The notes under the pieces: generated by a model
What the model was told of the DNA's origin: nothing
Database searches by the model: none
Seen by the model: only the letters and a program-made list of their open reading frames with translations
Assembly (NCBI RefSeq): GCF_000143415.4
Contig: NW_003314273.1
Location: forward strand, 1,952,052-2,016,051
DNA: 64,000 bases
Direction of reading: 5' to 3'
Source of the DNA: Selaginella moellendorffii
Lineage: Eukaryota > Plantae > Lycopodiophyta
Shown here: positions 1-50,070 of the stretch, piece after piece
Layout: each line of letters opens with the position of its first letter
How positions within the stretch are numbered: the stretch's first letter is position 1
Position numbers and translations under genes: made by a program

Positions 1-1839
1 GACACAGCACTCCTAGTTCTCAGGCAGCTCCCAAACACCTAAATTAGAAGTATGGTTGTGTTACGTGATAAATACCTTCTAAGGTGAGATGTGCAAAAGA
101 CCTTTTAATACCCTCTCCACATTAAAATTGCATCTTGTGAAGGCTATAAGATGGAAATAAAAAAGCTATAAACTTATGAATGTTTCATAAAATTATAAAG
201 CATTAATGGTGTTAAAGATCTTATTCCAACTTGGTATATATTATTTAGTAGTGTCAAAAAAAATTTTTAAAATGACATTTCTCTCAAATAACTATCACCA
301 TCTAAGATGATGTTCTATATAAAAGGATTTTCTAATAAAAAGAGCTAATAAACAAGGGAGTTGACAAGGATATCTTGATATACTAAAGAATATTTTATAA
401 GGTTTTAGCTGCAATATTTTATTAAAAAGGTTTTAAAAAATAATAATTTAAGTATATAATATTTTTTAGCAATATTTACTATTTGATAGAGGTTTTGTAT
501 CATCACTTAATTTAGAAAAGAAAATATTATTTTTAAACTCTATAAATTAGTATTTACACTAATTGTTTAAGTATATATTTATATTAAGCTTTTCATTATT
601 ACTATAAAGGTGATTATAAGAAATGCCCTATATTTTTTTCAGTGTAATTTATAGATAAATTTTAATTTAATTTTAAATATAATACCAATATCTTTTTTTT
701 CACCTCATATTCAAACATTATCATGAATCCAACGTTTAAAATTTTGATCCATCCTATGCAAAAGATGAAAAACATTATTTAAACATTTAAAGAATTATAT
801 GTACTTGCAACTCAGGAATTGGTTGATTATGATGTTGTAAAGCTTCTCATTTACCATATCACTTCCATAACTGAGAATTATATACTCATGATGATAATAT
901 TGTTGTTTGATGTTAATCTTTTACTTTTAACTATAATGCCTTTGAGTATGTTGTCTTCGCATCCTTTGACTAAGTATTTGTAATCTTTATATAATTGTTG
1001 TTTCTCGTTTATTAATACGAAATCAGAAAACATTTAAAGAACTTGAATTGTAATTATAAAGTTTATATATTTGTACAGGACATGGTTAAAAGAAGAATAT
1101 AACATCTAATCTACAACAAAATCTCAAAGAAACTTAAGTCCCAAGTTTTAATATGGGTTTAATCAAAGTTGTTTTGGATAAAAAGTTCTATATAGTAATG
1201 TAAATAGGTTTCTAAATAAGCTTGTATACGTTTAAGTACTACAGATCTATAGTCGGTTTAACCTATAGCAGATTGAATATTAATCTAAATCAACAACAAC
1301 TATTAGATATTAAAATATCCTAGAATTTGCAAGCATATTCTAGGATATTTTAATATCTAGGTTTTGTTCATATTTTTATTTATAATTTTCTAAACACTTT
1401 CTAGTATATTCTTGTTTATTTTACTATTAATATTAATCTTGATTTATAAATTAATTTTTTTGTTATAACTATTGATCAATTAAATTACTCAATGAATGTT
1501 ACTACTGCAAATTAATTAAGAGATAAGTATTGTCTCTCATATTTTTTATCTTTATCTCTTCACCATGGTGTGCCAGCTAAGATCCTTTCACTTCTTTTCA
1601 GGTACCATCTTTGTTTGTGTTTCATTGACATACTTTGCATCACACACTTTCCTTGCAAAGTTTACCAACAAGCTCCTGAGAAAAGATTTTCTCTCATTTT
1701 GATTAAGTTCTTCGGATCCATGAGATTAAAGCATATGCCTTCAGTCATATGTAGCGCTTTTAGTTCTCAGGCAGTTCCCAAGCACCTAAATGAAAAGCAA
1801 CCTTCCACAGTACCTATGACCATCATGCTTCGTAAGGCG

Positions 1840-2790
1840 CTCTCCAGTTACTCCAAATGAGTAGTGCAAGAAGAAGTGTGTCATCGTGACAGTGACGCCA
1901 GAGTACTTCTGAACTTGGGGTGGAAAACTTCTCGAGCGGCAGGCATGTCTCCACACTGAGCGAGCACATTCCGTCCAGATTTCTCTCCCGGATCTGCGAG
2001 TGGAGCCTCTTCTCTGCTAAGTCACCGCGTGCATTGAGCACCACCATGAAAAGTCTGAGCGTTTGGCTGCCGGTTTGCTCGTAGCACTCTAGAGCAAAGG
2101 TTGTTCTCAGCATATCCCAAGAAACGATGTTTTGCTGCTCCATGCAAAGTCTCAGAGTTTGGAGGCAGACCAGCTTCTCGTTGCATCTGATAGAAGACGT
2201 GCATGTCCCATGATGATCGTGTTCCAGGCAACCAACGTCGTGTTTCTTCGTCCTCCCGACAAATGCATTGGCTTCGATTCACAATTTGTGAGGTAGACCA
2301 ACCTATCCTGTTCTTCGTCCCATCCTCTCAAACAACCTGTGTTGCAAGCCGCAGTGTAGATACTTTCACAATTGCACTCGCTTGATTCCTGGCTTATGAT
2401 GCTCTTGACTCTGGGGAAACCTATCTGGCTGCTATGCCTTGCATCGAAGTTGAGATTTGAGCACCTGCAAGAACAGAGAGCAAAAGTAGTACGTTACCTT
2501 TTCTCAAACCTTTCGTCTCAAGCAACTTCTCTGGCCTTTCGAGGTGCACTAACGTCTGCTCGCCCGTCACCTCTAGAGGATACCTCAGTCAAATCGAAAC
2601 TTGGTAGGTTCCTGCTCTACTTTCCAGTCCATGTTCCGAGCCAGCTGCGCGATAACTTCCAAGCCTGGTGACTTCCACCAGTGGACTCTTCACCGTCCGT
2701 GAGCAAGACCCTGCTGTCTTCTTGCTCTGCAACTTCATCTCCTTGAAGATTGCTTGTACACAATCTTCCATGTGACAAGGCATGCACTGT
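1840..2790 (-). pseudogene. PLS-class PPR remnant (unit B1)
   Basis: Frameshifted PPR-like pieces such as MEQQNIVSWD, QPNAQTF and AIFKEMKLQ; paralogous to the clearer remnant at 14010-15045. Confidence 0.7.
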
Positions 2791-2796
2791 GCTGAC

Positions 2797-3573
2797 TTAC
2801 GCGTCACTGCCAGTGTTGGCAGGACACTTTGAGGAGAATCCCAGAGTGCCATTGCTGTGCGAACCACGAGTGTGAGCTTCCAGCTGTTTCTTCTCAGTCA
2901 GAGAATCGTCCACCACAACTTCGATCTGCCACCCGGGATCCTGAAAGATCGCATTCCTGCACTGCTTCCTCTGAGAGAACATCCATCGCACGAGCAAAAA
3001 GCATGCGAGCAGCACCAAGATCGCAACCAAAACCCACAGAAGAAGCTGGAGCAGCGACCACGGCGTCCTCCGAACCACTGTAACTACTGCTGCGGGTGTT
3101 GGTGTGGCCACTGCTGCGTCGTGACCCTCGCGACGATGGTGGTGGTGGTGGTGGTGGTGGTGGTGGTGGTGGTGGTGGTGATGGTGGTGGTTGTGGCGTC
3201 CTCCATGGTGGTGACCATGGTGGTGAACAACCAGAGGAGCTCCATCACCGTGATGATGATGGTACACTGCTGCTGCTGGAGCTGGATCGTGGTGGCGAGC
3301 ATCAGGCGCTGGAGCTAGATGAGCAGGGTGGCCACGAGCAGGGTGAACGAAAGCAGCTGGCGCTGGGGCTCGAACTGGAGCGTCACCTTGAAGAACTGGA
3401 GCTAAAGCTGGCACTGGCTCGTGGGCTCCTGGAGGATGGTGTCCATGGTGGTGTGGTGGATGTGCTGGAGCTAGAGCTGGAGCTCGCGGGTGTGAAGCTC
3501 GGTGATGGCCGCCATGCCAGGGCGCTGGAGCTCGGCGGGCAAGCGTTGGGGCGGCGTGAGCGCGAGAGACCAT
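2797..3573 (-). CDS. His/Pro/Ala-rich single-pass membrane protein, 258 aa, 18-His run (unit B1)
   Basis: ATG-to-TAA ORF with AP/PA repeats, poly-His, a hydrophobic segment WSLLQLLLWVLVAILVLLACFLLV and basic RWMFSQRK. The frame is kept in paralogs through in-frame indels. No family recognised. Confidence 0.6.
   Translation of the reverse strand: MVSRAHAAPTLARRAPAPWHGGHHRASHPRAPALAPAHPPHHHGHHPPGAHEPVPALAPVLQGDAPVRAPAPAAFVHPARGHPAHLAPAPDARHHDPAPAAAVYHHHHGDGAPLVVHHHGHHHGGRHNHHHHHHHHHHHHHHHHHHRREGHDAAVATPTPAAVVTVVRRTPWSLLQLLLWVLVAILVLLACFLLVRWMFSQRKQCRNAIFQDPGWQIEVVVDDSLTEKKQLEAHTRGSHSNGTLGFSSKCPANTGSDA
3136..3189. repeat. (GGT/CAC)n microsatellite encoding poly-His
   Basis: 18 triplets here; 7 at ~8544, 8 at ~33235, 16 at ~42449; hidden by the N gap in the copy at ~18.1 kb. 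Confidence 0.95.
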
Positions 3574-4027
3574 AGCTTACCTGACGAGAGAGAAAAATCC
3601 AAGCGAGAAAGATTATAACCTAACCCTTGACTTAGAAAATAGAAAATAAAGAGGTACTTTTGGCTTTGTGAAAAAAACAAGAGCTTGTGACGTTGTGGAT
3701 TGTCGGACTTGAACTGAGCATGCCAAAGAGCCCAAACCTAGATGTGAACAGCGATTTAATCTCACAATCACGAAATGCTCAATATTTCAAAAAGATAAGG
3801 CATTTTTAATTTGATGGCAACTCCTTTCCATGCTCAATTCTAATTTACTTGCAGTGAATGAAACTTTTTTACTCGTTTGCAAAAAAGTGGGAAAAAGAAA
3901 TACAAGATAAACATCTATGCATTGCTCTGTTGACAATCTCACGGTGCAACATCCATTCATAGTTCCCCTAGTCAACACCAGTAAAATCGGTCAAAACGCC
4001 TGGAACGATCCAATAATCAAACATATT

Positions 4028-4084
4028 TGGAGATGCTGGTTATTGATCCCTAAGCGAGCACTCTACCATCTGAGTTATCTCCCC
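4028..4084 (-). pseudogene. tRNA-Ala pseudogene with 16-nt internal deletion
   Basis: Reverse complement reads GGGGAGATAACTCAGATGGTAGAGTGCTCGCTTAG^GGATCAATAACCAGCATCTCCA; the 3' anticodon arm and variable loop are missing. Confidence 0.85.
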
Positions 4085-4566
4085 TTAGCAAAGAAACAAA
4101 AATGCTAAACTTTTCTCTTCACCATTCTAATACTCATCCTTGGAGATTCTGGCAGCTTTTGTTGCATTTCAAGAGCCTTTTGAGAGATGAGCTTTGGAAA
4201 GCCCACCATCTCCAGCAAGTTTCTATAGCCAAGAAGCTGCATCAGCAGGCAACCATGAAGAATGTTACTAATGCTTATAATAATAATACATATTATAGTA
4301 ATAATAATCACAAGAGGAGGAGGAAAAGGGATAGTGTTTTGCTTTGCAGTGTTATGCAAGAGGATGAGTAAAGCAATTGGTAAAACCAACACAATATAAA
4401 TCAACTGGTATGGTCTTCTGTACCAATCAAATTGTCTAAACACTAATATTAATTGGTATTTTGGTTTGCTAGTAAACATATTTAGCTACATATTTGTATA
4501 GCTAAAAGTCTTTTAAAATGAGTAACTTGTTTTTCTTACAAAAGCTCAAAATTGCAAATGTCACCT

Positions 4567-4823
4567 TCACATTCTTTCAAAATTTAAGTGCATTTGCTTT
4601 TCTGAACAAACAAATAGAGATATTGGGCATGCTTGATCAATCCAAAGAAACCAATTATTAAAAGCTTACTTGGTGATGGATTTTGTTTCAAGGTGGCCTC
4701 TCTCCATTCCTTGTAATCCAAGCATGTTGTCCTGCCTGGATCTTGTACCAAAACCAAACTAATGCCTGTGGAACTTGTAAGTTGTAACAAGCAAATCAAT
4801 GCCTTCCTACTGACCTCAAGAAT
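4567..4823 (-). pseudogene. Inverted ORC6 3' fragment (last two exons plus two introns)
   Basis: Reverse complement aligns to ~47871-48151 (DPGRTTCLDYKEW vs DPGRTTCLEYEEW). Introns are retained, so the duplication was at DNA level. Confidence 0.9.
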
Positions 4824-5830
4824 GTACAACTTAATGTAGTCCTATACAGATCTGATAATAGAGAGAGCAAAAGGAGTCATTAAAAATATTTTCAAATATT
4901 CTGGTACACGAAAGAATAATTTCTTAATGTTTTCGTGGCAATATTTTTATTAAACAGGTATTTTTAAAAATTTTAAATTTAAATAGTATTTAGATCTGAG
5001 TGGCAATATTTCTTATTTAATAGAGGTTTTACCTTCTGACCTGGTAATAGAGGTTTTACATGAAGCAATGCTTGGTTTACTTGATAGTAGTATCAATCAT
5101 TGAATAATTTGAATGAGCAATAATTATATACATATTTATAAATTATAAATCAAGATTAATATTATTGCATATCAATAGTGGAATAGAAAAGAATATACTT
5201 GAAATTTTTTTAGGAAATTTTATAAATTATAAACATGATCATAAATTATAAAAAAGATTAATCTAAATGAACAACAACCATTAGATAGTAGAATATCCTA
5301 AAATATCCAAGCATATTCAAAGTATATATAATACCACTTCAAGTTTGCTTAAGCAAACCAGTTATATATATGTATATATATAGTGTTTGGTCTCTTAAAC
5401 TTACACAAGCTTATTCACTATAAAACTTTAGACTTAAGTTTTTCCAACATTTTGTTGTAGAATATTCTTCTTTCAACCATGACCTGTACAAATATACAAA
5501 TTTCATAATTACAATTCAAGTTTCCTGATTTCGTATTTGTAGGAGAAACAATAAATATATGAAGATTACAAATACTTGGTGCAAAGACAATATACTCAAA
5601 GGCAATATAGTTAAAAAGTAAATATGAATCAAGCAACAATACCATAATCACATGTATATAGTTTTCAATTAGGAAAGTATTATTGTAAATGGGAATTTTT
5701 ACAACATTATAATCAGCCAATTTCCAAGTTGCAATTGCACATACTTATTTTAATGTTAAATTTCTAAAGTCTTTCATCCTTTGTATAGGATGGATCCAAA
5801 TGTTAAATTTTGAATTCATCTTAATGTTTG

Positions 5831-7350: not shown

Positions 7351-7406
7351 GAGCTAATTGATATACACATTTTCTGTATTCCTTTTCCATATTCCATACA
7401 CTCACA
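7351..7406 (-). mobile_element. Terminal LTR fragment of the family at 50943-51118
   Basis: Reverse complement TGTGAGTGTATGGAATATGGAAAAGGAATAC... matches TGTGAATGCATGGAATATGGAAAGGGAATAT at 50943. Confidence 0.7.
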
Positions 7407-7748
7407 TTAATAAATTATTATTTATAAGTTACACATAAAATAACAAAGGGCATTTTTTAAAGTTACGCTCAAATGGATTTTATAGCAATAATTAAAGATT
7501 TAATAATTACTATTATTAAATATTAAATTGATAATTTCTTCTATAAATTAGGTGGCAAGGCAAAACCTTTATTGATTAGGAAATATTGCCACTCATATTT
7601 AAATATTATTTAAATTACTAATTTGTTTAAACTACCTCTTTAATAGAAATATTGCCACTAAAACATTAAGAAAATATTTTTTAGTGTACCAAAATATTTT
7701 AAAAATTTATCATTTTGTTGACCTAGCTCTCTCTATTGGCAGATCTGT

Positions 7749-7870
7749 CCTAGTAAGCTTTTAATAATTAATTTCTTTGAATTGATCAAGCGTGACCAAT
7801 ATCTCTATTTGTTTGTTCAGGGGATATGAGAGACCAAAAGCAAATGTGCTTAAACTTTCAAAGAATGTGA
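7749..7870 (+). pseudogene. ORC6 last intron and last exon fragment (unit B')
   Basis: CCTAGTAAGCTTT...GTTCAGGGGATATGAGAGACCAAAAGCAA...TGTGA matches ~48030-48151. Confidence 0.8.
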
Positions 7871-8164
7871 ATATGACATTTCCAATTTTGAAATTTTGTA
7901 AGAAAAAAAGTTACTCTTTTTAAAACACTTTTAGCTATACAATTATGTAGCTAAATATGTTTACTAACAAACCAAAATACCAAATAATATTAGTGTTGCT
8001 AACAATTATAATAATAATACATAATATGGTAATAATATTCACAGTTCCAGGCGTTTTGACCGGATTTACTGGTGTTGACCTCTGGGGGAGCTATGGATGG
8101 ATGTTGCACCATGAGACTATCAAAACAGCAGTGGATAGATATTTATCTTTTTCCCACCCTGGCA

Positions 8165-8903
8165 TGCGCCCTGGCATGAAGGCCATCACTGAGCTCCACA
8201 CCCGCGAGGTCCAGCTCTAGCTCCAGCACCACACCACCATGGACACCATCCTCGGGAAGGCCACGAGCCAGTGCCAGCTTTAGCTCCCGTTCTTCAAGGT
8301 GACGCTCGAATCTGCTCGTCCAGATGTATGGCAAATGCGGCAGCGTCGATGACGCCCAGCGCCAGCTGCTTTCGTTCACCCTGCTCACGGCCACCCTGCT
8401 CATCTAGCTCCAGCGCTGGTATCCTTGATCATGCTCGCCACCACAATCCAGCTCCAGCAGCAGCAGTGTACCATCATCATCACGGTGATGGAGCTCCTCT
8501 GGTTGTTCACCACCATGGTCACCACCATGGAGGACGCCACAACCACCACCACCACCACCACCACTGTCGCGAGGGTCACGACGCAGCAGTGGCCACACCA
8601 ACACCCGCAGCAGTAGTTACAGTGGTTTGGAGGACGCCGTGGTCGCTGCTCCAGCTTCTTCTGTGGGTTTTGGTTGCGATCTTGGTGCTGCTCGCATGCT
8701 TTTTGCTCGTGCGATGGATGTTCTCTCGGAGGAAGCAGCACAGTAATGCGATCTTTCAGGATCCCGGGTGGCAGATCGAAGTTGTGGTGGACGATTCTCT
8801 GACAGAGAAGAAACAGCTGGAAGCTCACACTCGTGGTTCGCACAGCAATGGCACTCTGGGATTCTCCTCAAAGTGTCCTGCCAACACTGGCAGTGACGCG
8901 TAA
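8165..8903 (+). pseudogene. 5'-truncated His-rich membrane protein copy (unit B')
   Basis: Lacks the ATG and has CGA>TGA at ~8190; carries +37 and +11 nt indels; TM segment and tail intact (ORF 8271..8903). Confidence 0.7.
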
Positions 8904-8909
8904 GTCAGC

Positions 8910-9860
8910 ACAGTGCATGCCTTGTCACATGGAAGATTGTGTACAGGCAATCTTCAAGGAGATGAAGTTGCAGAGCAAGAAGACAGCAGGGTCTTGCTCA
9001 CGGACGGTGAAGATCACATACAAGGGTCCACTGGTGGAAGTCACCAGACTTGGAAGTTATCGCGCAGCTGGCTCGGAACATGGACTGGAAAGTAGAGCAG
9101 GAACCTACCAAGTTTCGATTTGACTGAGCTATCCTCTAGAGGTGAGGGGCGAGCAGACGTTAGTGCACCTCGAAAGGCCAGAGAAGTTGCTTGAGACGAA
9201 AGGTTTGAGAAAAGGTAGCGTACTACTTTTGCTCTCTGTTCTTGCAGGCGCTCAAATCTCAACTTCGATGCAAGGCATAGCAGCCAGATAAGGTTCTCAA
9301 GAGTCAAGAGCATCATAAGCCGGGAATCAAGCGAGTGCAATTGTGAAAGTATCTACACTGCGGCTTGCAACACAGGTTGTTTGAGAGGATGGGACGAAGA
9401 ACAGGATAGGTTGGTCTACCTCACAAATTGTGAATCGAAGCCAATGCATTTGTCGGGAGGACGAAGAAACACGACGTTGGTTGCCTGGAACACGATCATC
9501 ATGGGACATGCACGTCTTCTATCAGATGCAACAAGAAGCTGGTCTGCCTCCAAACTCTGAGACTTTGCATGGAGCAGCAAAACATCGTTTCTTGGGATAT
9601 GCTGAGAACAACCTTTGCTCTAGAGTGCTACGAGCAAACCGGCAGCCAAACGCTCAGACTTTTCATGGTGGTGCTCAATGCACGCGGTGACTTAGCAGAG
9701 AAGAGGCTCCACTCGCAGATCCGGGAGAGAAATCTGGACGGAATGTGCTCGCTCAGTGTGGAGACATGCCTGCCGCTCGAGAAGTTTTCCACCCCAAGTT
9801 CAGAAGTACTCTGGCGTCACTGTCACGATGACACACTTCTTCTTGCACTACTCATTTGGA
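8910..9860 (+). pseudogene. PLS-class PPR remnant (unit B')
   Basis: Mirror copy of 1840-2790. Confidence 0.7.
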
Positions 9861-12800
9861 GTAACTGGAGAGCGCCTTACGAAGCATGATGGTCATAGGT
9901 ACTGTGGAAGGTTGCTTTTCATTTAGGTGCTTGGGAACTGCCTGAGAACTAAAAGCGCTACATATGACTGAAGGCATATGCTTTAATCTCATGGATCCGA
10001 AGAACTTAATCAAAATGAGAGAAAATCTTTTCTCAGGAGCTTGTTGGTAAACTTTGCAAGGAAAGTGTGTGATGCAAAGTATGTCAATGAAACACAAACA
10101 AAGATGGTACCTGAAAAGAAGTGAAAGGATCTTAGCTGGCACACCATGGTGAAGAGATAAAGATAAAAAATATGAGAGACAATACTTATCTCTTAATTAA
10201 TTTGCAGTAGTAACATTCATTGAGTAATTTAATTGATCAATAGTTATAACAAAAAAATTAATTTATAAATCAAGATTAATATTAATAGTAAAATAAACAA
10301 GAATATACTAGAAAGTGTTTAGAAAATTATAAATAAAAATATGAACAAAACCTAGATATTAAAATATCCTAGAATATGCTTGCAAATTCTAGGATATTTT
10401 AATATCTAATAGTTGTTGTTGATTTAGATTAATATTCAATCTGCTATAGGTTAAACCGACTATAGATCTGTAGTACTTAAACGTATACAAGCTTATTTAG
10501 AAACCTATTTACATTACTATATAGAACTTTTTATCCAAAACAACTTTGATTAAACCCATATTAAAACTTGGGACTTAAGTTTCTTTGAGATTTTGTTGTA
10601 GATTAGATGTTATATTCTTCTTTTAACCATGTCCTGTACAAATATATAAACTTTATAATTACAATTCAAGTTCTTTAAATGTTTTCTGATTTCGTATTAA
10701 TAAACGAGAAACAACAATTATATAAAGATTACAAATACTTAGTCAAAGGATGCGAAGACAACATACTCAAAGGCATTATAGTTAAAAGTAAAAGATTAAC
10801 ATCAAACAACAATATTATCATCATGAGTATATAATTCTCAGTTATGGAAGTGATATGGTAAATGAGAAGCTTTACAACATCATAATCAACCAATTCCTGA
10901 GTTGCAAGTACATATAATTCTTTAAATGTTTAAATAATGTTTTTCATCTTGGATCAAAATTTTAAACTTTGGATTCATGATAATGTTTGAATATGAGGTG
11001 AAAAAAAAGATATTGGTATTATATTTAAAATTAAATTAAAATTTATCTATAAATTACACTGAAAAAAATATAGGGCATTTCTTATAATCACCTTTATAGT
11101 AATAATGAAAAGCTTAATATAAATATATACTTAAACAATTAGTGTAAATACTAATTTATAGAGTTTAAAAATAATATTTTCTTTTCTAAATTAAGTGATG
11201 ATACAAAACCTCTATCAAATAGTAAATATTGCTAAAAAATATTATATACTTAAATTATTATTTTTTAAAACCTTTTTAATAAAATATTGCAGCTAAAACC
11301 TTATAAAATATTCTTTAGTATATCAAGATATCCTTGTCAACTCCCTTGTTTATTAGCTCTTTTTATTAGAAAATCCTTTTATATAGAACATCATCTTAGA
11401 TGGTGATAGTTATTTGAGAGAAATGTCATTTTAAATTTTTTTTTTTACACTACTAAATAATATATACCAAGTTGGAATAAGATCTTTAACACCATTAATG
11501 CTTTATAATTTTATGAAATATTCATAAGTTTATAGCTTTTTTATTTCCATCTTATAGCCTTCACAAGATGCAATTTTAATGTGGAGAGGGTATTAAAAGG
11601 TCTTTAGCACATCTCACCTTAGAAGGTATTTATCACTTAACACAACCATACTTCTAATTTAGGTGTTTGGGAGCTGCCTGAGAACTAGGAGTGCTGTGTC
11701 AGAATGAGGGAACTATCACTGAAGGCCAATCTCATGGATCCGAAGAACTTAATCAAAATGAGAAAAAAAGTTTTCTCAGGAGCTTGTCAGTAAACTTTTC
11801 GAAGAAAATGGAGAAAGAGTGTAATACAAGGTTGACGGAGCTGTCAACAAAACCAAACAAAGATGTCAAAACTCATTTACTAAAGAAAGAGAATAAATAA
11901 AGATATCAATGCGAGTACTTCCTTATTTGAGAAATAACTGAAATTCTTAAATGTGGAAAACAAACAAACCATTATGTCAACCAAGTTTGTAGCTCTAAAA
12001 TTGCTTTTTTTTATAAGTATTACCTCCAACCCACTATAAACATATGAACTTATATTACTTATTTGCATCTTCTAAAGTGCTTGCAACTTTTAAATTCTAG
12101 TAAGACCACTTGTGCTTATTATGGTATTCAACTTGAAAAGATTTCTTTGTGTGTTCATGTAAATTTTATTCCCAATGGAAAAAGCAACTCCCCTCTTAGC
12201 TGACTAAAACTTTGTTTATACCACCATTATTAACAATTTTAATACCTCTTTAATTTGTTTATCTTCATTACATAAAACATTGGTGGTGTTAAAGATTCTA
12301 TTCTAACTCGGAATATTTTATTTAGTAGTGTTCAAAAAAGAATTTTAAATCGCATCTCTCTCAAATAGTTATCACCATCAAGGATTATGCTCTACATAAA
12401 ATGATATACTTACACAAGGAAGCAGGGAGTTGACAAAAAAGGGCTGTTAGAGACCGAAAGCAAATGCCCTTAAACTTCGAAAGAATGTGATTTTGATATT
12501 TTGTAAAAAAGGAAAAAGTAAAGTTACTCATTTTTAAAAAACTTCTAAATATGTTTACTAGCAAATTAAAATACCAAATAATATTAGTATTTATTTGGTA
12601 CTAAAGATCATACCAATTGATTTATATTGTCTTGGTTTTACCAATTGCTTCTACCCATCTTGAATAACACTGCAAAGCAAAATAATTCACTAGCCTTGTT
12701 CCTCCTCTTGTTTGTACTATTACTATATGTATTATTATTATAAGCATTAATAACATTCTTCATGGTTGCCAGCTTTGCAAGGAGTGCCCTGTCGTACGCA

Positions 12801-13062
12801 TCAAGCAACCCATCCTGTGGATTCCACACGCATCTCTTTTGATTCTCAGGGGTATGCTCCACAAATCCCTCGGCCTTAAACCTGGAGCACTTAATAAGAC
12901 GTTGCCAAGATGAGATCTCATGACCTTGAGTATTTTCCTCCATAGCTAGAGCTCTAGAATCAATCAAAACACTCTTGAAATGTGACAAAAGATGCCAGAA
13001 TCTCCAAGGATGAGTACTAGACTGGTGAAGAGAAAAGCTTTGCATTTTTGTTTCTATTGTAA

Positions 13063-37330: not shown

Positions 37331-37403
37331 GGGGATGTAGTTCAGATGGTAGAGCGCTCACTTAGCATGCGAGACGCACCGGGATCAATACCTGGCATCT
37401 CCA
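37331..37403 (+). pseudogene. tRNA-Ala(AGC), full length but degenerate (unit A2)
   Basis: Five substitutions affecting the D stem, anticodon stem, variable region, T loop (GATCAATAC) and T stem. Confidence 0.8.
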
Positions 37404-38075: not shown

Positions 38076-39331
38076 AGCGATGCATGTTATCTCAAAGGAA
38101 GCAGCGCAGGAATGCGATCTTTCAGGAGCCCGGGTGGCAGATCGAAGTGACGGATCATCTGGAAGTTGTGGTGGACGATTCTCCGACTGAGAAGAAACAG
38201 CTGGATGCTCACACTCGTAGTTCCCACAGCAATGGTACACTGGAATTCTCCGCAAAGTGTCCTGCCAACACTGGCAGTGACACGTAAGTCAGCACAGTGC
38301 ATGTGTTGTCACAGGGAAGATTGTGTAGAATCAATCTTCAAGGAGATGAAGTTGCAGAGCAAGAAGACAGTAGGCTCTTGCTCACTGACGGTGATCTCAC
38401 CCAGAGATCACATACAAGGGTTGACTGGTGGAAGTCGCCAGATTTGGAAGTTATGACACAACTGGCTCGGAACATGGATTGGAAGGTAGAGCAAGAACCT
38501 ACCAAGTTTCGATTTGATGAAGGGTTTACGAGCTATCCTCTAGAGGTGACAAGGGAGCAGACGTTGGTGCACCTCCAAAGGCCAGAGAGGTTGCTCGAGA
38601 CGAAAGGTTTGAGAAAATGTAACGTACTACTTTTGCTCTCTATTCTTGCAGGCGCTCAAATCTCAACTTTGATGAGAAGAAGCAGTACAGGGCATAGTGG
38701 CCAGATAAGTTTCTCCAGAGTCAAGAGCATCACAAGCGGGGAATCAAGCAAGTGCAATTGTGAAAGTATGGTCGAAGTCTACACTGCGGCTTGCAACACA
38801 GGTTGTTCGACAGGATGGGACGAAGAACATGATAGGTTGGTCTACCTATCCTGGAAAGCAACACTCTCGCCTCACAAATTGTGAATATGAAGCCGATGCA
38901 TTTGTCGCAAGCAGCCTCGTGGACATGTGGAAGCGTCAGAAGTGTACAGGAGGACGAAGAAACATGCCTGGAACACGATCATCACGGGACATGCACTTCT
39001 TCTATCGGATGCAACGAGAAGCTGGCCTACCTCCAAACGCTGAGCAAAACATCCTTTCCTGGGATACACTGAGAACAACCTTTGCTCTCGAGCGCTATGA
39101 GCAAGCCAGCAGCCAAACGCTCAGACTTTTGTGGTGGCGCTCAAGGCACGGGGCGACTTAGGCGAAGAGGCTCCACTCGCAGATCTGGAAGAGAAATCTG
39201 GACGGAATCCACTACTCGCGTGCTCACTCATCACATTCTATAGGAAGTGTGGAGACGTGGCTGCCTCTCAAGAAGTTTTCCGCCCCAAGTTCAGTATTAC
39301 TCCGGCACTTCCTCTTACACTACTCATTTGA
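38076..39331 (+). pseudogene. Orphan His-gene tail plus PLS-PPR remnant (unit A2)
   Basis: Paralog of 13796-15045. Confidence 0.8.
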
Positions 39332-41209
39332 AGTACCTGGAGAGTGCCTTACAAAGCATGATGTTCATAGGTACTATAGTTTTTAGTTCATAGCTTTTTT
39401 GTTTCATCTTATAGCTAAAATAGCTTGAAGTCAGATACTTCTAACTAGTTCGACCATCTTGGCCTAAGCATCATGTAAGCAGAGTACCTCCTTGTGAAGG
39501 CGAAACTGAAGCTTGTCAGTTTCATGAAAAGTTGTGAAGGCTCTAGAGCTTATCTCCTTACACATGGTAAGTATCTTGTTCTTTGACTTTTTCATCAATG
39601 ACATGTTATTTCAGGGACGGGAATGGACATACAATCTTATTGTAAAGAGGGTATTAGGAGGTGTTGCTCATCTCGGGAGCTTGTTGGTAAACTTTGTGAG
39701 GAAAATGGAGAAAGAGTGTAATGCAAGATTGACGGAGCCATCAACAAAACCCAAACAAAGATGAAAACAGGCGAAGGGATCTTAGGGGCCACACCATGGT
39801 CAAAAGATAAAAATATCAGAGACAATCATGCTCTGGATCATATTTCACAAATGGTTATTTATATAGGAAATTATATATCTATGGTGTTTGGTCACTTAAA
39901 CTTAACTTGAAAACTTGGGACTCAAGCTTCTCCAAGTAGATTAGATGTTACATTCTGTCCTGTACAAATGTACAACTTTGTAACTATGATTCAAGTTCTT
40001 TAAATCTTTTTTGATTTCGTGATAGAGAGTTGTCCAAAGTAAATTGTGTGCTTTTGTCTTGCTGATGCTTGGCAAGTTTCTTTGTGCCTTCTTTCAGCTG
40101 ATCTAGACAAGGTCGTTGATACATTTAAGTTTCGTGATGGTTGCACGTTTTTCTTCTATTGAAGAATTAACTCTCTCTTTGAGTGTAATTATAAGAAATG
40201 CCCTATATTGTTTTCAGTGTAATTTATAGATAAAGTTTATTTTAGTTTCAAATACAATACCAATATCTATTTTTTTCACTTCATGTTCAGACGTTATGAT
40301 GAATCCAAACTTTAACATTTGGATCCATCCTATGCAAAGGATGAATGATTTCAGAATTTTAATGTTTATATGTAATTGTAATTCGGGAATTGGTTGATTA
40401 TGATGTTGTAAAGCTTCCCATTTATAAGATCACTTCCATACTTGAGAATTATATACTCATAATGATGGTATTCCTGCTTGATGGCTATTTTTTACTTTCA
40501 ACTATAATGCTTTTGAGTATGTTGTCTTTGCTTCCTTTAACCAAGTATTTGTAATGTTCATATGTTTGTTGTTTCTCATCTACTAATATGAAATCAAAAA
40601 AGATTTAAAGAACTTGAATTATAATTATAAAAGTTATATATTTGTACAGAGCATGGTTGAAAGAAAAACATAACATCTAATCAACAACAAAATCTCAGAG
40701 AAACTTAAGTCCCAAGTTTAATCAAAGAAGTTTTGGGAAAAAAGTTCTATATAATAATGTAAATAGGTTTGTGAATAAGCTTCTATAGGTTTAAAGTGAC
40801 CAAACACTATAGATCTTTGCTTCAGCAAACCTATGGTGGTATTGAATATACTTAAACTATGCTTGGAGATTCTAGGATATTTTAATATCTAATAGTTGTT
40901 GTTCATTTAGATTAATCTTTTTGATTATAATTTATAAACTTCCGTATAAACACTTTCTAGTATATTTTTGTTTATTCTACTATAATATTAATCTCAAATA
41001 AGTTTATAACTAAATTACTCACAGCAAATTAATTAAGAGATAAGTATTGTCTCTCATAGTTTTTATCTCTTCACCAAGGTGTGCCAGCTAAGATCCATTC
41101 GCGTCTTTTCAGGTACCATCTTTGATTGACGGCTCCATCAACCTTGCATAACACTCTTTCCTTGCAAAGTTTACCAACCTCCCAAGAAAAGCTTTTCTCT
41201 CATTGAGCG

Positions 41210-42100
41210 ACCCGCTGAGTAGTGGATTCCCTCCAGATTTCTCTCCCAGATCTGCGAGTGGAGCCTCTTCTCTGCTAAGTCGCCGTGTGCCTTGAGCGCC
41301 ACCATGAAAGCCTGAGCGTTTGGCTGCGGCTTGCTCATAGCACTCAAGAGCAAAGGTTGTTCTTGGCAAATCCCAGGAAACAACGTTTTGCTGCTCCATG
41401 CAAAGTCTCAGCGTTTGGAGGCAGGCCAGCTTCTCGTTGCATCTGGTAGAAGACGTGTACGTCCCATGATGATCGTGTTTCAGGCAACCAACGTCGTGTT
41501 TCTTTGTCCTCCTGAACACTTCTGATGCTTCCACATGTCCACGAGGCTGCTTGCGACGAATGCATTGGGTTAATTTGCGAGGTAGACCAACCTATCCTGT
41601 TCTTCGTCCCATCCTGTCAAACAACCTGTATTGCAAGCCGCAGTGTAGACTTCGACCATACTTCCACAATTTTGCACTTGCTTGATTCCTGGCTTATGAT
41701 GCTCTTGACTCTGGGGAAACCTATCTGGCCGCTATGCCCTGCTCTGCTTCTTCTCATCGAAGTTGAGATTTGAGCACCTGCAAGAACAGAGAGCAAAAGT
41801 AGTACGTTACCTTTTCTCAAACCTTTCGTCTCAAGCAACTTCTCTGGCCTTTCGAGGTGCACTAACGTCTGCTCGCCCGTCACCTCTAGAGGATAGCTCA
41901 GTCAAATCGAAACTTGGTAGGTTCCTGCTCTACTTTCCAGTCCATGTTCCGAGCCAGCTGCGCGATAACTTCCAAGCCTGGTGACTTCCACCAGTGGACT
42001 CTTCACCGTCCGTGAGCAAGACCCTGCTGTCTTCTTGCTCTGCAACTTCATCTCCTTGAAGATTGCTTGTACACAATCTTCCATGTGACAAGGCATGCAC
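41210..42100 (-). pseudogene. PLS-class PPR remnant (unit B4)
   Basis: Paralog of 16920-17820. Confidence 0.75.
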
Positions 42101-42109
42101 TGTGCTGAC

Positions 42110-42880
42110 TTATGCGTCACTGCCAGTGTTGGCAGGACACTTTGAGGAGAATCCCAGAGTGCCATTGCTGTGCGAACCACGAGTGTGAGCTTCCAGCTGT
42201 TTCTTCTCAGTCAGAGAATCGTCCACCACAACTTCAATCTGCCACCCGGGATCCTGAAAGATCGCATTCCTGCACTGCTTCCTCCGAGAGAACATCCATC
42301 ACACGAGCAAAAAGCATGCGAGCAGCACCAAGATCGCAACCAAAACCCACAGAAGAAGCTGGAGCAGTGACCACGGCGTCCTCCGAACCACTGTAACTAC
42401 TGCTGCGGGTGTTGGTGTGGCCACTGCTGCGTCGTGACCCTCGCGACGATGGTGGTGGTGGTGGTGGTGGTGGTGGTGGTGGTGGTGATGGTGGTGGTTG
42501 TGGCGTCCTCCATGGTGGTGACCATGGTGGTGAACAACCAGAGGAGCTCCATCACCGTGATGATGATGGTACACTGCTGCTGCTGGAGCTGGATCGTGGT
42601 GGCGAGCATCAGGCGCTGGAGCTAGATGAGCAGGGTGGCCGCGAGCAGGGTGAACGAAAGCAGCTGGCGCTGGGGCTCGAACTGGAGCGTCACCTTGAAG
42701 AACTGGAGCTAAAGCTGGCGCTGGCTCGTGGCCTCCTCGAGGATGGTGTCCATGGTGGTGTGGTGGATGTGCTGGAGCTAGAGCTGGAGCTCGCGGGTGT
42801 GAAGCTCGGTGATGGCCGCCATGCCAGGGCGCTGGAGCTCGGCGGGCAAGCGTTGGGGTGGCGTGAGCGCGAGAGACCAT
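42110..42880 (-). pseudogene. His-rich membrane protein copy with premature stop right after the TM segment (193 aa, 16 His; unit B4)
   Basis: CGA>TGA at 42299-42301; the rest of the tail continues in frame to 42110. Confidence 0.65.
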
Positions 42881-43347
42881 AGCTTACCTGACGAGAGCTT
42901 CGACAATAGAAAAATCCAAGCGAGAAAGATTATAACCTAACCCTTGACTTAGAAAATAGAAAATAAAGAGGTACTTTTGGCTTTGTGAAAAAAACAAGAG
43001 CTTGTGACGCTGTGGATTGTCGGACTTGAACTGAGCATGCCAAAGAGCCCAAACCTAGATGTGAACAGCGATTTAATTTCACAATCACGAAATGCTCAAT
43101 ATTTCAAAAAGATAAGACATTTTTAATTTGATGGCAACTCCTTTCCAAGCTCAATCCTAATGTACTTGCAGTGAACAAAACTTTTTTACTCGTTTGCAAA
43201 AAAGTGGGAAAAAGAAACACAAGATAAATATCTATGCATTGCTCTGTTGACAGTCTCATGGTGCAACATCAATCCATAGCTCCCCCAAAGGTCAACACCA
43301 GTAAAATCGGTCAAAACACCTGGAACGATCCAATAATCAAACATATT

Positions 43348-43404
43348 TGGAGATGCTGGTTATTGATCCCTAAGCGAGTGCTCTACCATCTGAGCTATCT
43401 CCCC
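43348..43404 (-). pseudogene. tRNA-Ala pseudogene with 16-nt deletion
   Basis: Same deletion as 4028-4084. Confidence 0.85.
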
Positions 43405-43886
43405 TTAGCAAAGAAACAAAAATGCTAAACTTTTCTCTTCACCATTCTAATACTCATCCTTGGAGATTCTGGCAGCTTTTGTTGCATTTCAAGAGCCTTT
43501 TGAGAGATGAGCTTTGGAAAGCCCACCATCTCCAGCAAGTTTCTATAGCCAAGAAGCTGCATCAGCAGGCAACCATGAAGAATGTTACTAATGCTTATAA
43601 TAATAATACATATTATAGTAATAGTAATCACAAGAGGTGGAGGAAAAGGGATAGTGTTTTGCTTTGCAGTGTTATGCAAGAGGATGAGTAAAGCAATTGG
43701 TAAAACCAACACAATATAAATCAACTGGTATGGTCTTCTGTACCAATCAAATTGTCTAAACACTAATATTAATTGGTATTTTGGTTTGCTAGTAAACATA
43801 TTTAGCTACATATTTGTATAGCTAAAAGTATTTTAAAATGAGTAACTTGTTTTTCTTAAAAAAGTTCAAAATTGGAAACGTCACCT

Positions 43887-44143
43887 TCACATTCTTTCAA
43901 AATTTAAGTGCATTTGCTTTTCTGAACAAACAAATAGAGATATTGGGCATGCTTGATCAATCCAAAGAAACCAATTATTAAAAGCTTACTAGGTGATGGA
44001 TTTTGTTTCAAGGTGGCCTCTCTCCATTCCTTGTATTCTAAGCATGTTGTCCTGCCTGGATCTTGTACCAAAACCAAACTAATGCCTTTGGAACTTGTAA
44101 GTTGTAACAAGCAAATCAATGCCTTCCTACTGACCTCAAGAAT
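43887..44143 (-). pseudogene. Inverted ORC6 3' fragment (unit B4)
   Basis: ORF 43904..44149 contains DPGRTTCLEYKEW and matches the ORC6 tail. Confidence 0.9.
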
Positions 44144-44629
44144 GTACAACTTAATGTAGTCCTATACAGATCTGATAATAGAGAGAGCAAAAGGAGTCAT
44201 TAAAAATATTTTCAAATATTCTGGTACACGAAAGAATAATTTCTTAATATTTTCGTGGCAATATTTTTATTAAACAGGTATTTTTTAAAAATTAAATAAT
44301 ATTTAGATTTGAGTGGCAATATTTCCTATTTAATAGAGGTTTTACCTTCTGACCTAATTTACAGAATAAATTCACTATATTTAGTATAGCTGAATATACA
44401 TTTATTACTATAAAATCCATTTGAGTGTAACTTTAAAAAATGTCCTTTGTTAGTTTATGAGTAATTTATAAGTAAATATTTATTTGTAAATATATATCAA
44501 ACTCAAATACAATACCAATATCTAGTTATTTTTCAATGTCATAAACCCCCCATATTAAGATATTGCAGTGAATCCAAATTTTAAGATTTGGATCCATCCC
44601 AAAAGCCATATAATATATAAAATATATAT

Positions 44630-46470
44630 TGTAAGTGTTCAGGATAAAGGAATAGGTATATTAATTAATGTTTAGGCCTTTACTTATATACAAAAATAAA
44701 TGGACCAGATTTAGTCCCAAATGGACAGTCAATATGTTATACTACTATTAGTGTATTACCTAGCTAGGGTAATACATATATATATATATATATATATATG
44801 TATTTACAAACTTTACACCATCCTCCCTTTTGGAAGATGAAAAGGTGATAATAATAAGTCAGGTGGAACATTTGGAGCTTCTGTTGGGCAATTATAAATT
44901 ACCACAAGAATCTAAAACTCCCACAAAACCACCAATAAAGTTGCTAATAACCATGACTGAAATAAAATTTAAAGCCATGGCATAATCATTAGCCCACTAT
45001 AGAACCTTGATGAACCAATTGTAACTTTGTATGCAACTCCCAAATGCTCAAACCAACCATGCAACCATAACTTTGCACTGGGGAGGTCAGACTCACTCCA
45101 TTCGTCTTTCACATTTTCTTTATCCCCTCCTCGAAGAAAAAAAAGTTTTGAAACAATAGCTCCTTTTGGACTTACTACACTGTTCTCACTCCGCTATTTA
45201 TGTTCGGCCTCACTCCACTATCGCATCTATTCGGCCTCATTATGTCGGGGTTGGATGTTTCATTCAAACTCGCTATGCTCGTCCTTACTCGACAATCCAT
45301 ATCATTTATCCTCGCTCCACTATCGTATTCGCTCGTCCTCACTCCATCATCGGGGCCAGACTCCCATCCATCCCCTCTACTCCCTCCTCTAAAGAAGAAA
45401 AAGTTTGAAGTGTCAAAGCAAAAAAGAGAAAACAAAAAAAATTGAGAAAAAATAATTGTGAAAGAAGAAAAAGTAGATAAAGAAGCATTGGAAGAAAAAT
45501 TTGCAACAACTAGCAATGCAAAAATGGGAAATCAAAAGAATATATACTTAAAACTTGGTCAATAGGGGATTTCCTTTTGTAAAATATTTCAGCTACAATA
45601 TAAGCAAAAGATTCACACCACACAACCGTCTCAACACTTGATATGAGAAAATCAATAACAACATTCACACTCTCAAGGGAATATATAAACTCCTCATGAG
45701 CAATAGTAAAACAAAGGTTGTTAGTGGCACTCACAAGTGAGACATGTATTCAACCCAAAATTTTGGCTAAAGTGACTCAACCCTTGGAACAGGGAAATAC
45801 TCAATACCAGAACTAATCAAAGACTCTACCAATGAAATAAAAGCAAGATTCTCAACTTCATGGATACACTCAATATCCAGATTAGTATGAGGAGGATAAA
45901 AAACACTCAACTTAACACTGGATTGAGAATTAGAATCATGAGAGTCATAAATGATCGACGTGCCAAAAAAAGAAAATGCTACATATGAAGAAGAAATACT
46001 AGGAACTTGAGAAAGTGGCTCAGGCTGAAAAATAAAAAAAAAAGTTGGGAAAGAGCAAAAGGGAAAGAGTAAGGATTAGATAACAGATTGAAATATTGAC
46101 ACCTACTTCGCAAAATCTCCACTTCATCTCCAAAACTATTTCCATAATATTTAAGCTCATCATCACACTTTGGAATCCACCCAAGTTTGTACATATTGTC
46201 TTTCCACAAACTTGATCCTCAAACATTCTCCAAGAATTAAACTGTGTCATCCATAGTTCACTAATCAATATCACAATCACACTTCATATCAATAGGAGAT
46301 GTTAGAACATTGAGAACAGGATAAGCCATATAATCACATCCCACAAAAGTTGGAGACCAACAAACAACACATCAAGGATAGGCACAATACCAATATGATC
46401 ACACCCCATAACACCAAAAGTTAGATCCAACGGAGCAGTATTAATAGCTTCAAGTGACATACTTCTTGAT
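44630..46470 (-). mobile_element. Truncated duplicate of the 34502-36757 LTR element (LTR 44630-44817)
   Basis: Same left flank and internal sequence, so duplicated after insertion; homology stops at ~46470. Confidence 0.85.
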
Positions 46471-46792: not shown

Positions 46793-48151
46793 ATGGAGAT
46801 GAAGGCGCTGGAATGGCGGCTGGGAATGGCGGCCGATCGCGAAGTGCTGCGCAAGGCGGAGGAGCTGCTGCGCCTCTGCCGGATGGAATTTGATGCGGCG
46901 GCATTTGGCATTGTGAGTGTGCTTGCTTCTTTCTTTCCGCCTGTGACTTGAGGGTATCCAATGCTCTTGTGTGTTATTCCAGGGCGATGTCTGCCGATCC
47001 GTGCTCTGTTTCGAGATCGCGTGCTCGATGTAAGTATCCAGATCTGCATTTCTTTGCGGGTGGAGTTTATTTCTTTCTTTTCTTCTCGGACAGGATGCAA
47101 GTTCCATTCGATCGGCAAAAGGGAATCAAGCTGAGTGGTCTTTCTGATAAGGCTTACAATAGATCACTCACCACAGTCCAGAATGCTCTTGGTATCAGGT
47201 ATTTCTTCAAAGCCAGGAAGAAAAGAGATGGAAAAAAAATGTGGGAATAACATTTTTTTCTTCAGGACAAGCTTGAATGTGCGCGAGCTCGCTGTGCAAT
47301 TTGGATGCGTGAGACTCATACAAGCTGTCCAGAGAGTCTTGGCAGCGTAAGAGCTTCCTCTTTCCTTTTAGTTTATTTCTTTACGGGCTCTCTCTACGTT
47401 TTGCTCCAGATACAAAGAGCGATTTTTGGCCACTTTACCAGAAGCACGACGTCGAAGCGCTGATTTCGATCGCCCTGTATTCACCAGCGTCGCGTTTTAT
47501 TTATGCGCGAGAAAGCAAAAGGCAAGCAGTTTCCAATGCTTTTTTTCACGGTTTTACTGTCTTTTTTTTGTATGTTTCAACAGCTTAAAGTTGACAAAGC
47601 TAAATTGATGGAGGTGTCTAGCACGTCGGACCCTGAGTTTTCCAACGTAAGCTCCAACGAGCAATTGTATTGCCGATTCTAGATTTTATTTTTCTACAGG
47701 TTGCCGCGTCTATGACAGATATCTGCTTCGATTTGGTCGGTGTTGAGAAAGAGAAATCCGAATCAAGAACTAGAGGATGCAAGAGAGGTATGCAAAGAAC
47801 TCGATATTTTTTCTGCAAGGCCTGATCTCACAGTGCGAGCATTTCTTCTGCAGCTCTGTCGGATGCCACGAATCTCGAGGTCAGTAGGAAGGCGTCGATC
47901 TGCTTGTTGCAACTTCCAGGTTCTAAAGACATTAGTTTGGTTTGCATGCAGGATCCAGGCAGGACAACATGCCTAGAATACGAGGAATGGAAAGAGGCCG
48001 TTTTGTCATCCTCGAAACAAAATCCATCACCTAGTAAGCTTTTAGTGATTAGTTTCTTTGGATTGATCAAGCGTGCCCGATTTCTCCGTTCGTTTGTTCA
48101 GGGGCTGTCAGAGACCGAAAGCAAGCACGCTTAAACTTCGAAAGCATGTGA
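46793..48151 (+). CDS. ORC6: Origin recognition complex subunit 6 (10 exons, one GC-AG intron at 47522-47583)
   Basis: Spliced product MEMKALEWRLG..RKAEELLRLC..LNVRELAVQFGCVR..YKERFLATLP..ADFDRPVFT..FYLCARKQKLKVDK..YEEWK..KQARLNFESM* matches plant ORC6. Confidence 0.95.
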
Positions 48152-48716
48152 TTTCGATATTTTGTAAAAAAGGAAAAAGTAAAGTTACTCATTTTAAAAA
48201 AAATTCTAAATATGTTTACTAGCAAATTAAAATACCAAATAATATTAGTATTTATTTGGTACTAAAGATCATACCAATTGATTTATATTGTCTTGGTTTT
48301 ACCAATTGCTTCTACCCATCTTGAATAACACTGCAAAGCAAAATAATTCACTAGCCTTGTTCCTCTGTACTATTACTATATGTATTATTATTATAAGCAT
48401 TAGTAACATTCTTCATGGTTGCCAGCTTTGCAAGGAGTGCCCTGTCGTACGCATCAAGCAACCCATCCTGTGGATTCCACATGCATCTCTTTTGATTCTC
48501 AGGGGTATGCTCCACAAATCCCTCGGCCTTAAACCTGGAGCACTTAATAAGACATTGCCAAGATGAGATCTCATGACCTTGAGTATTTTCCTCCATAGCT
48601 AGAGCTCTAGAATCAATCAAAAAACTCTTGAAATGTGACAAAAGATGGCTGGAATCTCCAAAGATGAGTACTAGACTGGTGAAGAGAAAAGCTTTGCATT
48701 TTTGTTTCTATTCTAA

Positions 48717-48789
48717 GGGGATGTAGCTCAGATGGTAGAGCGCTCGCTTAGCATGTGAGAGGCACTGGGATCGATACCCGGCATCTCCA
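48717..48789 (+). tRNA. tRNA-Ala(AGC) (unit A3)
   Basis: Full cloverleaf with canonical ATCGATA T loop, two G-U wobble pairs and TTTT downstream. Confidence 0.85.
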
Positions 48790-49459
48790 ACTATTTTCAA
48801 TCATTCCAAGCGTTTTGACCGATTTTACTGGTGTTGACTATGGTTGACCACTTGAGGAGCTAGAGATCCACGATGAAGAAGTAAAACCGGATGGTGCTAG
48901 TTCCTTCCACTGTTGGGTCACTGGATTGCTGCTCTACCGTCTGTGACAAACTGGCTTTTATTCCAGTACCCAGATGGGTTAATTCTTTTGCTTTTGCCTC
49001 TGACATTATGAAACTACTTTGATATGTTGTGTCTGCAATAGAGGCAACCATAATAAGAGACCTCCACCAGCCGAGAAAAAGAAGACTGGTAGGCAGGAGC
49101 GTGAAGACAACAAGGATGCCATCTACATGACAAAGATAATCCAACTTGCATTTTTGCATCTATCAGTCTCATGCTTTCGGTTGGGCACCGTGAGACTATC
49201 AAAACAGCAATGGATAGATATTTATCTCGTGTTTCTTTTCCCCAGTTTCCTGTAGGGAAGTAGTTTGTGCACGCTGATGGCTTGTGTCTCCATGATCACA
49301 TTCAATGAGTGCTAAGTTGAAAAACGAGGAAAAAAAGAGTTTCATTATTCAAAGTATGCAAAGTGGCGTGTCACTGCAAGTAGGACATTAGGATTGGAAA
49401 GATATCCATTTCTCTTTTTGAAATATCATACCTATACTGTGGAGAGCATTTTGTGATTG

Positions 49460-50070
49460 AGCAATGCATGTTATCTCAAAGGAAGCAGCGCAGGAATGCG
49501 ATCTTTCAGGAGCCCGGGTGGCAGATCGAAGTGACGGATCATCTGGAAGTTGTGGTGGACGATTCTCAGACTGAGAAGAAACAGCTGGATGCTCACACTC
49601 GTAGTTCCCACAGCAATGGTACACTGGAATTCTCCGCAAAGTGTCCTGCCAACACTGGCAGTGACACGTAAGTCAGCACAGTGCATGTGTTGTCACAGGG
49701 AAGATTGTGTAGAATCAATCTTCAAGGAGATGAAGTTGCAGAGCAAGAAGTCAGTAGGCTCTTGCTCACTGACGGTGATCTCACCCAGAGATCACATACA
49801 AGGGTTGACTGGTGGAAGTCGCCAGATTTGGAAGTTATGACACAACTGGCTCGGAACATGGATTGGAAGGTAGAGCAAACGTACTACTTTTGCTCTCTAT
49901 TCTTGCAGGCACTCAAATCTCAACTTTGATGAGAAGAAGCAGTATAGGGCATAGTGGCCAGATAAGTTTCTCCAGAGTCAAGAGCATCACAAACGGGGAA
50001 TCAAGCAAGTGTAATTGTGAAAGTATGGTCGAAGTCTACACTGCAGCTTGCAACACAAGTTGTTCGACAA
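49460..50070 (+). pseudogene. Orphan His-gene tail plus truncated PPR remnant (unit A3)
   Basis: ORF 49453..49671 gives the tail; internal deletion at ~49877; homology ends at ~50070. Confidence 0.75.

Follow-up and report, generated by a model that had tools for sequence, protein, structure and literature searches.

A probably young, unstable segmental-duplication cluster beside ORC6 in Selaginella moellendorffii with lineage-specific deletions in tRNA-Ala and His-rich frame units

We analyzed a 64,000-nucleotide stretch of Selaginella moellendorffii plant nuclear DNA (contig NW_003314273.1, positions 1,952,052 to 2,016,051 of the forward strand; hereafter the window), which consists of AT-rich spacers and GC-rich islands. 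Positions 1-50075 of the window contain eight copies of one unit comprising, in this order, the 3' end of ORC6, tRNA-Ala(AGC), a His-rich open frame and a PPR-like scrap. We conclude that this array is probably a young and unstable segmental-duplication cluster beside ORC6 with lineage-specific deletions, and not a gene pair preserved by complementary loss. The original prediction for this DNA had described the same eight-copy array of the same units, and had proposed that an inverted duplication produced two types, A with the tRNA and B with the His-rich gene, that these degenerated in a complementary manner, and that co-amplification of A+B pairs could then keep both lineages. Self-comparison and unit alignments confirmed the array, and the palindrome formed by two of the units bore out the inverted duplication; it is on preservation that the reading presented here departs from the prediction.

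Eight copies of one unit beside ORC6

Units were defined by self-comparison of the window together with targeted unit alignments. In the three units of type A the tRNA is on the plus strand, and in the five of type B the gene direction is on the minus strand, except in the inverted B1', as follows (with the supporting comparison in brackets).

1-5465, minus strand: B1, type B (self-comparison, alignments)
~7400-11700, plus strand: B1', type B, inverted copy of B1 (self-comparison, alignments)
12441-15739, plus strand: A1, type A, left arm of the A1/B2 palindrome (self-comparison, alignments)
15740-16296, no strand: central spacer of the A1/B2 palindrome, 557 bp
15467-20490, minus strand: B2, type B; the right palindrome arm is listed as 16297-20490, and the block tandem-copied as B3 starts at 15467
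20491-21724 and 31730-34294, minus strand: B3, type B, tandem copy of B2, split by a 10-kb Helentron
37191-39752, plus strand: A2, type A (self-comparison)
39753-44355, minus strand: B4, type B (self-comparison)
47873-50075, plus strand: A3, type A, founder-position copy, with an internal 127-bp deletion and its PPR side cut off

The ORC6-derived and shared parts of the units are the following.

46948-48134, plus strand: ORC6, the sole complete copy in the window, running into A3 (Pfam)
4244-4821, minus strand: copy of the ORC6 3' end in B1 (segments g and h)
13797-15042, plus strand: segment common to all units, containing the tail of the His-rich frame and a frameshifted PLS-type PPR-like scrap

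ORC6 was recognized by its ORC6 domain (PF05460, 24.9 bits with a cut-off of 22.2, 46948-47250) and its ORC6_2nd domain (PF21913, 36.6 bits with a cut-off of 27, 47426-47608), and the ORC6 3' ends of the other units were assigned by their position and by their similarity to 47873-48427. Because the ORC6 ends of the other units resemble 47873-48427, we regard A3 as the copy at the founder position. We also observed that 849 bp with ORC6 fragments of B4 are not present in B3, and that a further 2-kb duplicated stretch (34295-36348 and 44423-46470, 93.5% identical) follows B3 and B4. Dispersed short AT-rich repeats that are 77-78% identical lie near unit boundaries (36807-37186, 51328-51702 and 5421-5830) and are possible substrates for rearrangements.

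An old inverted duplication and later re-copying

An old inverted duplication accounts for the two types, A being one arm and B the other, as seen in the A1/B2 palindrome with its 557-bp spacer. Specifically, nested inverted matches between 15502-15739 and 16297-16799 form the inner arms, and the inverted matches between A1 and B2 extend outward from there across the PPR-like segment as far as the tRNA and the ORC6 end. A and B are 89-92% identical at aligned sites, and 84-88% identical once their many indels are counted, whereas identity at aligned sites within a type is 93-100%, i.e. a difference of 0-6% compared with ~10% between the arms. The corresponding values are 97-99% among the A copies, 98-99% among B2, B3 and B4, 98.4% between B1 and B1', and 93-95% between the latter two and B2, B3 and B4. 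Because the identities between arms and within types are so different, we infer that there was a single old inverted duplication and that the re-copies were made much later.

These re-copies took different parts of the palindrome. A block of A+B (12925-20067, 7.2 kb) was re-duplicated as 37191-44355 and is 97-98% identical there, B2 was re-copied in tandem to give B3 with the junction at 20490/20491, and B1 and B1' represent an inverted re-copy. A+B pairs were taken by only one duplication event, while the others took B alone (B2 to B3, and B1/B1'), and A3 stands as an A unit without a partner B. Of the co-amplification in the original prediction, the single 7.2-kb A+B block is what stood; because the other duplications took B alone or left A alone, we interpret the pair as having been amplified once, as a by-product of palindrome copying.

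Complementary deletions in the two types

The two types are distinguished by the following segments.

2991-3764, minus strand: 774-bp segment, present in B and not in A (unit alignment)
13795/13796, plus strand: A1 junction lacking the 774 bp, with counterparts at 38075/6 in A2 and 49459/60 in A3
13187-13520, plus strand: A-specific segment, 334 bp compared with 21 bp in B (unit alignment)

The lesions are complementary in that a 16-nt deletion affects the tRNA in B1-B4 and the 774 bp are missing from all A units, a deletion in A being the probable direction of the second change. At this level of detail the original prediction proved accurate: the A junctions were located at exactly 13795/6, 38075/6 and 49459/60, alignment confirmed that the 774 bp correspond to 2991-3764 in B1 and are not in A, the 16-nt tRNA deletion was found in B1-B4 with none of the tRNA in B1', and the ~330 bp (13190-13520) reported not to be in B correspond to the 334-bp segment listed above. 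In the A3 copy of this segment (48860-49159, minus strand), a frame gives a weak match (E 0.03) to PF01490, an amino-acid transporter family, at the beginning of the family model, and this transporter-like frame may be another captured gene scrap.

The 774-bp segment consists of 190 bp of AT-rich upstream sequence, an ATG, a His/Pro/Ala-rich part and a hydrophobic stretch, and it is flanked by an imperfect 12-bp direct repeat (TGATTGTGAGAT / TGCTCGTGCGAT). The brackets in B, TGATTG/TGAGAT and TGCTCG/TGCGAT, match at 9 of 12 positions, and A carries the hybrid TGATTG/AGCGAT. Because the A junction is a hybrid of the two 12-bp repeats, we favor a deletion in A between these imperfect direct repeats, and we consider it probable that this is how the difference arose; its direction is read from sequence internal to this locus. 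Minisatellite expansion as the origin of the 774 bp was considered and rejected, since Tandem Repeats Finder detected nothing in the segment beyond a (TGG)20 tract and several very small repeats.

Conversely, the 774 bp could be an insertion of captured or filler DNA in B, making A ancestral and the His-rich frame a new chimera on older PPR-derived sequence. The absence of the segment from A3, which lies beside the intact ORC6, would fit this possibility, as would the orphan status of the frame and the patchwork of gene scraps of which the locus is composed. However, the segment has no terminal repeats, whether inverted or otherwise, and the flanking 12-bp repeats match at just 9 of 12 positions, the hybrid in A being the expected product of a deletion between them. 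Moreover, one end of the segment lies in AT-rich non-coding DNA and the other falls midway through an open frame, the rest of which extends into sequence that A also has, and neither the word search nor the HMMER protein scan found a donor for it. We consider an insertion in B unlikely.

Integrity of the assembled copies

The only run of N in the window (18028-18214, 187 N) is an assembly gap inside the His-rich frame of B2. The sequence on either side of it aligns in collinear order with B1 (3000 / 3200, with 199 bp there compared with 187 N) and with B4 (42313 / 42507, with 193 bp there compared with 187 N), consistent with the two sides of the gap being continuous and at the expected distance. 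What is missing is the (CAC)n tract for the His residues, together with the hydrophobic segment of the frame. Because the length of the gap is only an estimate, the B2 frame was treated as unreadable. In B1, the pattern of identity is that of an exact mosaic, in which positions 1-2400 are ~100% identical to B1' and positions 2600-5465 are ~100% identical to B2; this points either to sequence having been exchanged very recently between copies or to a chimeric assembly.

The S. moellendorffii genome paper reportedly describes two haplotypes in the assembly that are ~1.5% apart, raising the possibility that part of the array is an artefact in which the ~98-100% identical copies (B1/B1', and the right half of B1/B2) are misplaced haplotype sequence. 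Both the mosaic structure of B1 and the gap in the repeat tract of B2 would be in line with such an artefact. Nevertheless, A and B, as well as B3 and B2/B4, are too diverged to be alleles, and B3 carries a private 10-kb insertion, and we regard an artefactual origin of part of the array as improbable.

The tRNA evolves faster than its flanks in A units

A 73-nt tRNA-Ala(AGC) was identified by ARAGORN and Rfam solely in the A units, and 57-nt stumps remain in B1-B4.

13063-13135, plus strand: tRNA-Ala(AGC) of A1, 58.5 bits, T at position 56
37331-37403, plus strand: tRNA-Ala(AGC) of A2, 42.3 bits, A-C mismatch in the anticodon stem
48717-48789, plus strand: tRNA-Ala(AGC) of A3, 55.0 bits, two G-U changes only
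4028-4084, minus strand: tRNA-Ala stump of B1, 57 nt, 13.6 bits
19053-19109, 34068-34124 and 43348-43404: tRNA-Ala stumps of B2, B3 and B4, 57 nt

All three A copies score above the gathering threshold of Rfam RF00005 (29 bits) and are called Ala(AGC) by ARAGORN; at position 56, A1 has a T compared with the C of A2, A3 and the family consensus. The stumps of B1-B4 have lost the anticodon arm by an identical 16-nt deletion. The B1 stump, which was the sole stump scanned and to which the others are near-identical, falls below the tRNA threshold (13.6 bits and E = 5, compared with 29), and B1' retains just the downstream flank of the tRNA.

Among the three A copies, pairwise differences in the tRNA affect 6/73, 3/73 and 7/73 sites compared with 24/778, 11/778 and 18/789 sites in the flanks, i.e. 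a divergence of 4.1-9.6% in the tRNA compared with 1.4-3.1% in the flanks (Fisher p = 0.04, 0.11 and 0.003). The direction of this difference is toward faster change in the tRNA, and purifying selection on the A tRNA was not seen in the comparison of these three copies. It is likely that at most one of the tRNA copies is a working, maintained gene, and the best candidate is that of A3, which adjoins the intact ORC6. As a separate observation, the A units contain a minus-strand open frame opposite ORC6, between ORC6 and the tRNA (48351-48641 and 12638-13045); ~130 bp of this frame are not in B, and it has no family match.

The His-rich frame lacks relatives and signs of constraint

The His-rich frame was found in the following states.

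2797-3573, minus strand: B1, open frame of 258 codons, intact, orphan
32896-33600, minus strand: B3, intact, with in-frame deletions of 14 codons and of 10 His codons
42299-42880, minus strand: open part of the B4 frame, with a premature stop after the hydrophobic stretch
8271-8903, plus strand: B1', frameshifted, without a start

Among the five B copies, the frame is thus broken in two (B4 and B1') and unreadable in one (the N gap of B2). Its composition is rich in His, Pro and Ala, with a (CAC)n tract of variable length and a hydrophobic stretch. Pfam returned just a sub-threshold match to DUF350, on the hydrophobic stretch, and a protein word search with the frame returned no match. HMMER against 1.84 billion representative proteins identified no relatives among 16 matches with a best E of 3.8e-5; all 12 matches that were inspected of these 16 are compositional and consist of poly-His beside a hydrophobic run. 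Because the frame itself gave no match there, the protein sets searched contain no model of it.

For the ratio of non-synonymous to synonymous substitution rates (dN/dS), we obtained values of 0.3-1.7 among the B copies, with 4-15 substitutions per pair, and of 0.6-0.8 between A and B over the 61-codon tail retained by both; in both cases the shifted-frame controls gave similar values. Codon-level constraint beyond that of the out-of-frame controls was therefore not detected in the B-B pairs or in the A-B tail. A stop-free run of at least 259 codons occurred in 3% of composition-matched first-order Markov simulations of the region, and other reading frames of the His region are also long. We consider it most likely that the frame is open by chance in a GC-rich sequence of triplet repeats, and that it stays so because the copies are young. 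Several observations weigh against this reading. The frame is intact in B1 and B3 and its length differences are all in frame, as expected for a real gene, but also for triplet-repeat slippage; the 3% frequency of equally long runs in the simulations counts as evidence for coding that is not negligible; and the substitutions among the young copies are too few for dN/dS to exclude weak selection. The frame may conceivably be a young gene.

The proposed preservation by complementary loss

The original prediction amounts to true complementary degeneration, in which the tRNA would be kept in A and a His-rich membrane protein in B, and selection would have favored amplification of the pair. The part of this proposal that stands is structural: complementary private deletions are fixed within each type, and one intact A+B block was duplicated. 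The open state of the frame in B1 and B3, with length changes that are only in frame, and the above-threshold scores of the A tRNAs are also as it would predict. Functional preservation is not supported, in that there is no sign of constraint in the comparison of the tRNA with its flanks or of frame dN/dS with its controls, and both types include broken copies. In particular, the protein sets that were searched yielded neither relatives of the frame nor a protein model matching it, two of the five frames are broken, the tRNA evolves faster than its flanks and has a stem mismatch in A2, and the pair was involved in only one duplication event. Nuclear tRNA isoacceptor genes are multi-copy in plant genomes and a single locus is unlikely to be indispensable, which also counts against complementary degeneration; a literature search yielded no figure for the number of nuclear tRNA-Ala genes in S. 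moellendorffii. We consider it very unlikely that complementary degeneration has preserved the two types.

A more specific scenario would be that the His-rich frame, with its single predicted helix, is a very young lineage-specific gene and that the other arm of the palindrome keeps the only working tRNA of the locus. Such a gene would have been born where a GC-rich triplet-repeat tract meets a dead PPR-like gene, and its copy number would now be expanding. If true, genes of RNA polymerase II and RNA polymerase III would be partitioned between the arms of an inverted duplication. We give this scenario very little credence, and continue with the segmental-duplication cluster as the probable explanation.

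A Helentron inserted in B3

21725-31729, plus strand: Helentron-type element of ~10 kb in B3, inserted at TTTTT/GTTTA

This element has a 5' palindrome (GGTTTGCTTAAGCAAACC) and a 3' hairpin (TTGCTGC...GCAGCAA), is without a target duplication, and contains frames for a PIF1-type helicase (28945-29895 and 30001-30642) and for DUF6570 (26838-27335). The region has a strong AT skew over 26-32 kb. The presence of a Helentron with PIF1-type helicase frames within the array would be compatible with a mobile cassette, i.e. with a Helitron-type or other transposon that captured and spread the ORC6 end, the tRNA, the frame and the PPR scrap. However, the Helentron ends at a single T-rich site inside B3, its termini bound none of the units, and the B3 flanks rejoin exactly around it when compared with B2 and B4. 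Because it is a plain insertion around which the flanks rejoin, we conclude that it is not the carrier of the cassette; moreover, unit boundaries vary from copy to copy without common termini and all copies are local, leaving a mobile cassette scarcely probable.

PPR-like sequence and neighboring genes

The segment shared by all units is PPR-like on the basis of two separate stop-free pieces of A1 that match a synthetic PPR-DYW protein in the PDB (E 0.0012 and 0.0024); the frames are broken and the PPR-like motifs lie in different frames. Pfam gave no PPR match in this segment even at E 10, and the 280-codon open piece that A1 has in the shared segment gave no match when used as the query of a word search. 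In a Pfam search of 37 open frames and stop-free pieces of the units and their neighbors, the units gave only the sub-threshold DUF350 match and the weak transporter match. A purpose-built hidden Markov model (HMM), made from the six repeats that the neighboring PPR gene carries at 52298-53032, was run against all six frames. It gave only insignificant matches in the units, as did tblastn with the same PPR gene; because these matches were insignificant, a PPR ancestry of the 774-bp segment was not demonstrated. A by-eye reading of the hydrophobic stretch as an out-of-frame PPR motif was dropped, as the PDB search gave no support for it.

Outside the array, 52182-53415 contains a genuine PPR gene (Pfam PPR E 1.7e-31), the sequence of which is unrelated to the PPR-like scrap of the units; it reads as three overlapping frames, which suggests an intron or a frameshift. 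The stretch 53718-54155 (minus strand) is the first exon of a germin-like (cupin) gene and is 100% identical to S. moellendorffii germin-like protein 11-1.

Discussion

We suggest the following order of events for the formation of the cluster. A stretch from inside ORC6 through tRNA-Ala(AGC) into a dead PPR-like gene would have been duplicated in inverted orientation, giving a palindrome with a spacer of ~560 bp. The arms would then have diverged by ~10% and by many indels, with the B arm losing 16 nt of the tRNA and the A arm most probably losing 774 bp by deletion between imperfect 12-bp direct repeats. Much later, pieces of the palindrome would have been re-copied as an A+B block, as a tandem B and as an inverted B, and stretches would have been exchanged between copies.

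On this reading of the DNA, the locus would be unremarkable as a case of local genome instability, with copying and erosion of scraps from ORC6, a tRNA, a dead PPR-like gene and an orphan frame. It carries a caution in that old duplicates acquire complementary deletions by chance, and evidence of constraint is needed before subfunctionalization is called. The history of the palindrome is well resolved: it comprises an old inverted duplication, re-copying as a block, in tandem and in inverted orientation, exchange between copies, and a transposon insertion that is dated. It could be of use for studies of palindrome growth in a plant with a small genome. Should the His-rich frame be expressed, it would be a candidate for a newly born gene with variable copy number.

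Comparison with known systems places the locus closest to familiar forms of duplication and decay. It shares inverted arms, a short spacer, kilobase-scale identity, mosaic copies and decaying gene fragments with the palindromic segmental duplications of plants and animals and differs from them in nothing essential, although the arms are old here (~10%) compared with the re-copies (0-6%). The complementary lesions in two elements of two duplicate lineages resemble duplication-degeneration-complementation, or reciprocal gene loss, but here neither of the retained elements gives a sign of constraint, one is not demonstrably a gene, and both are still decaying within their lineage. The B stumps resemble plant tRNA pseudogenes and relics in that they retain the acceptor and D arms and have no anticodon arm; here, however, the damage consists of a simple loss of 16 nt, together with degradation of the T arm. 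Finally, the long His/Pro/Ala-rich frame without relatives and with a variable (CAC)n tract is similar to orphan or de novo open reading frames in GC-rich repeats, the difference being that the predicted frame continues here into sequence that seemingly derives from a dead PPR-like gene.

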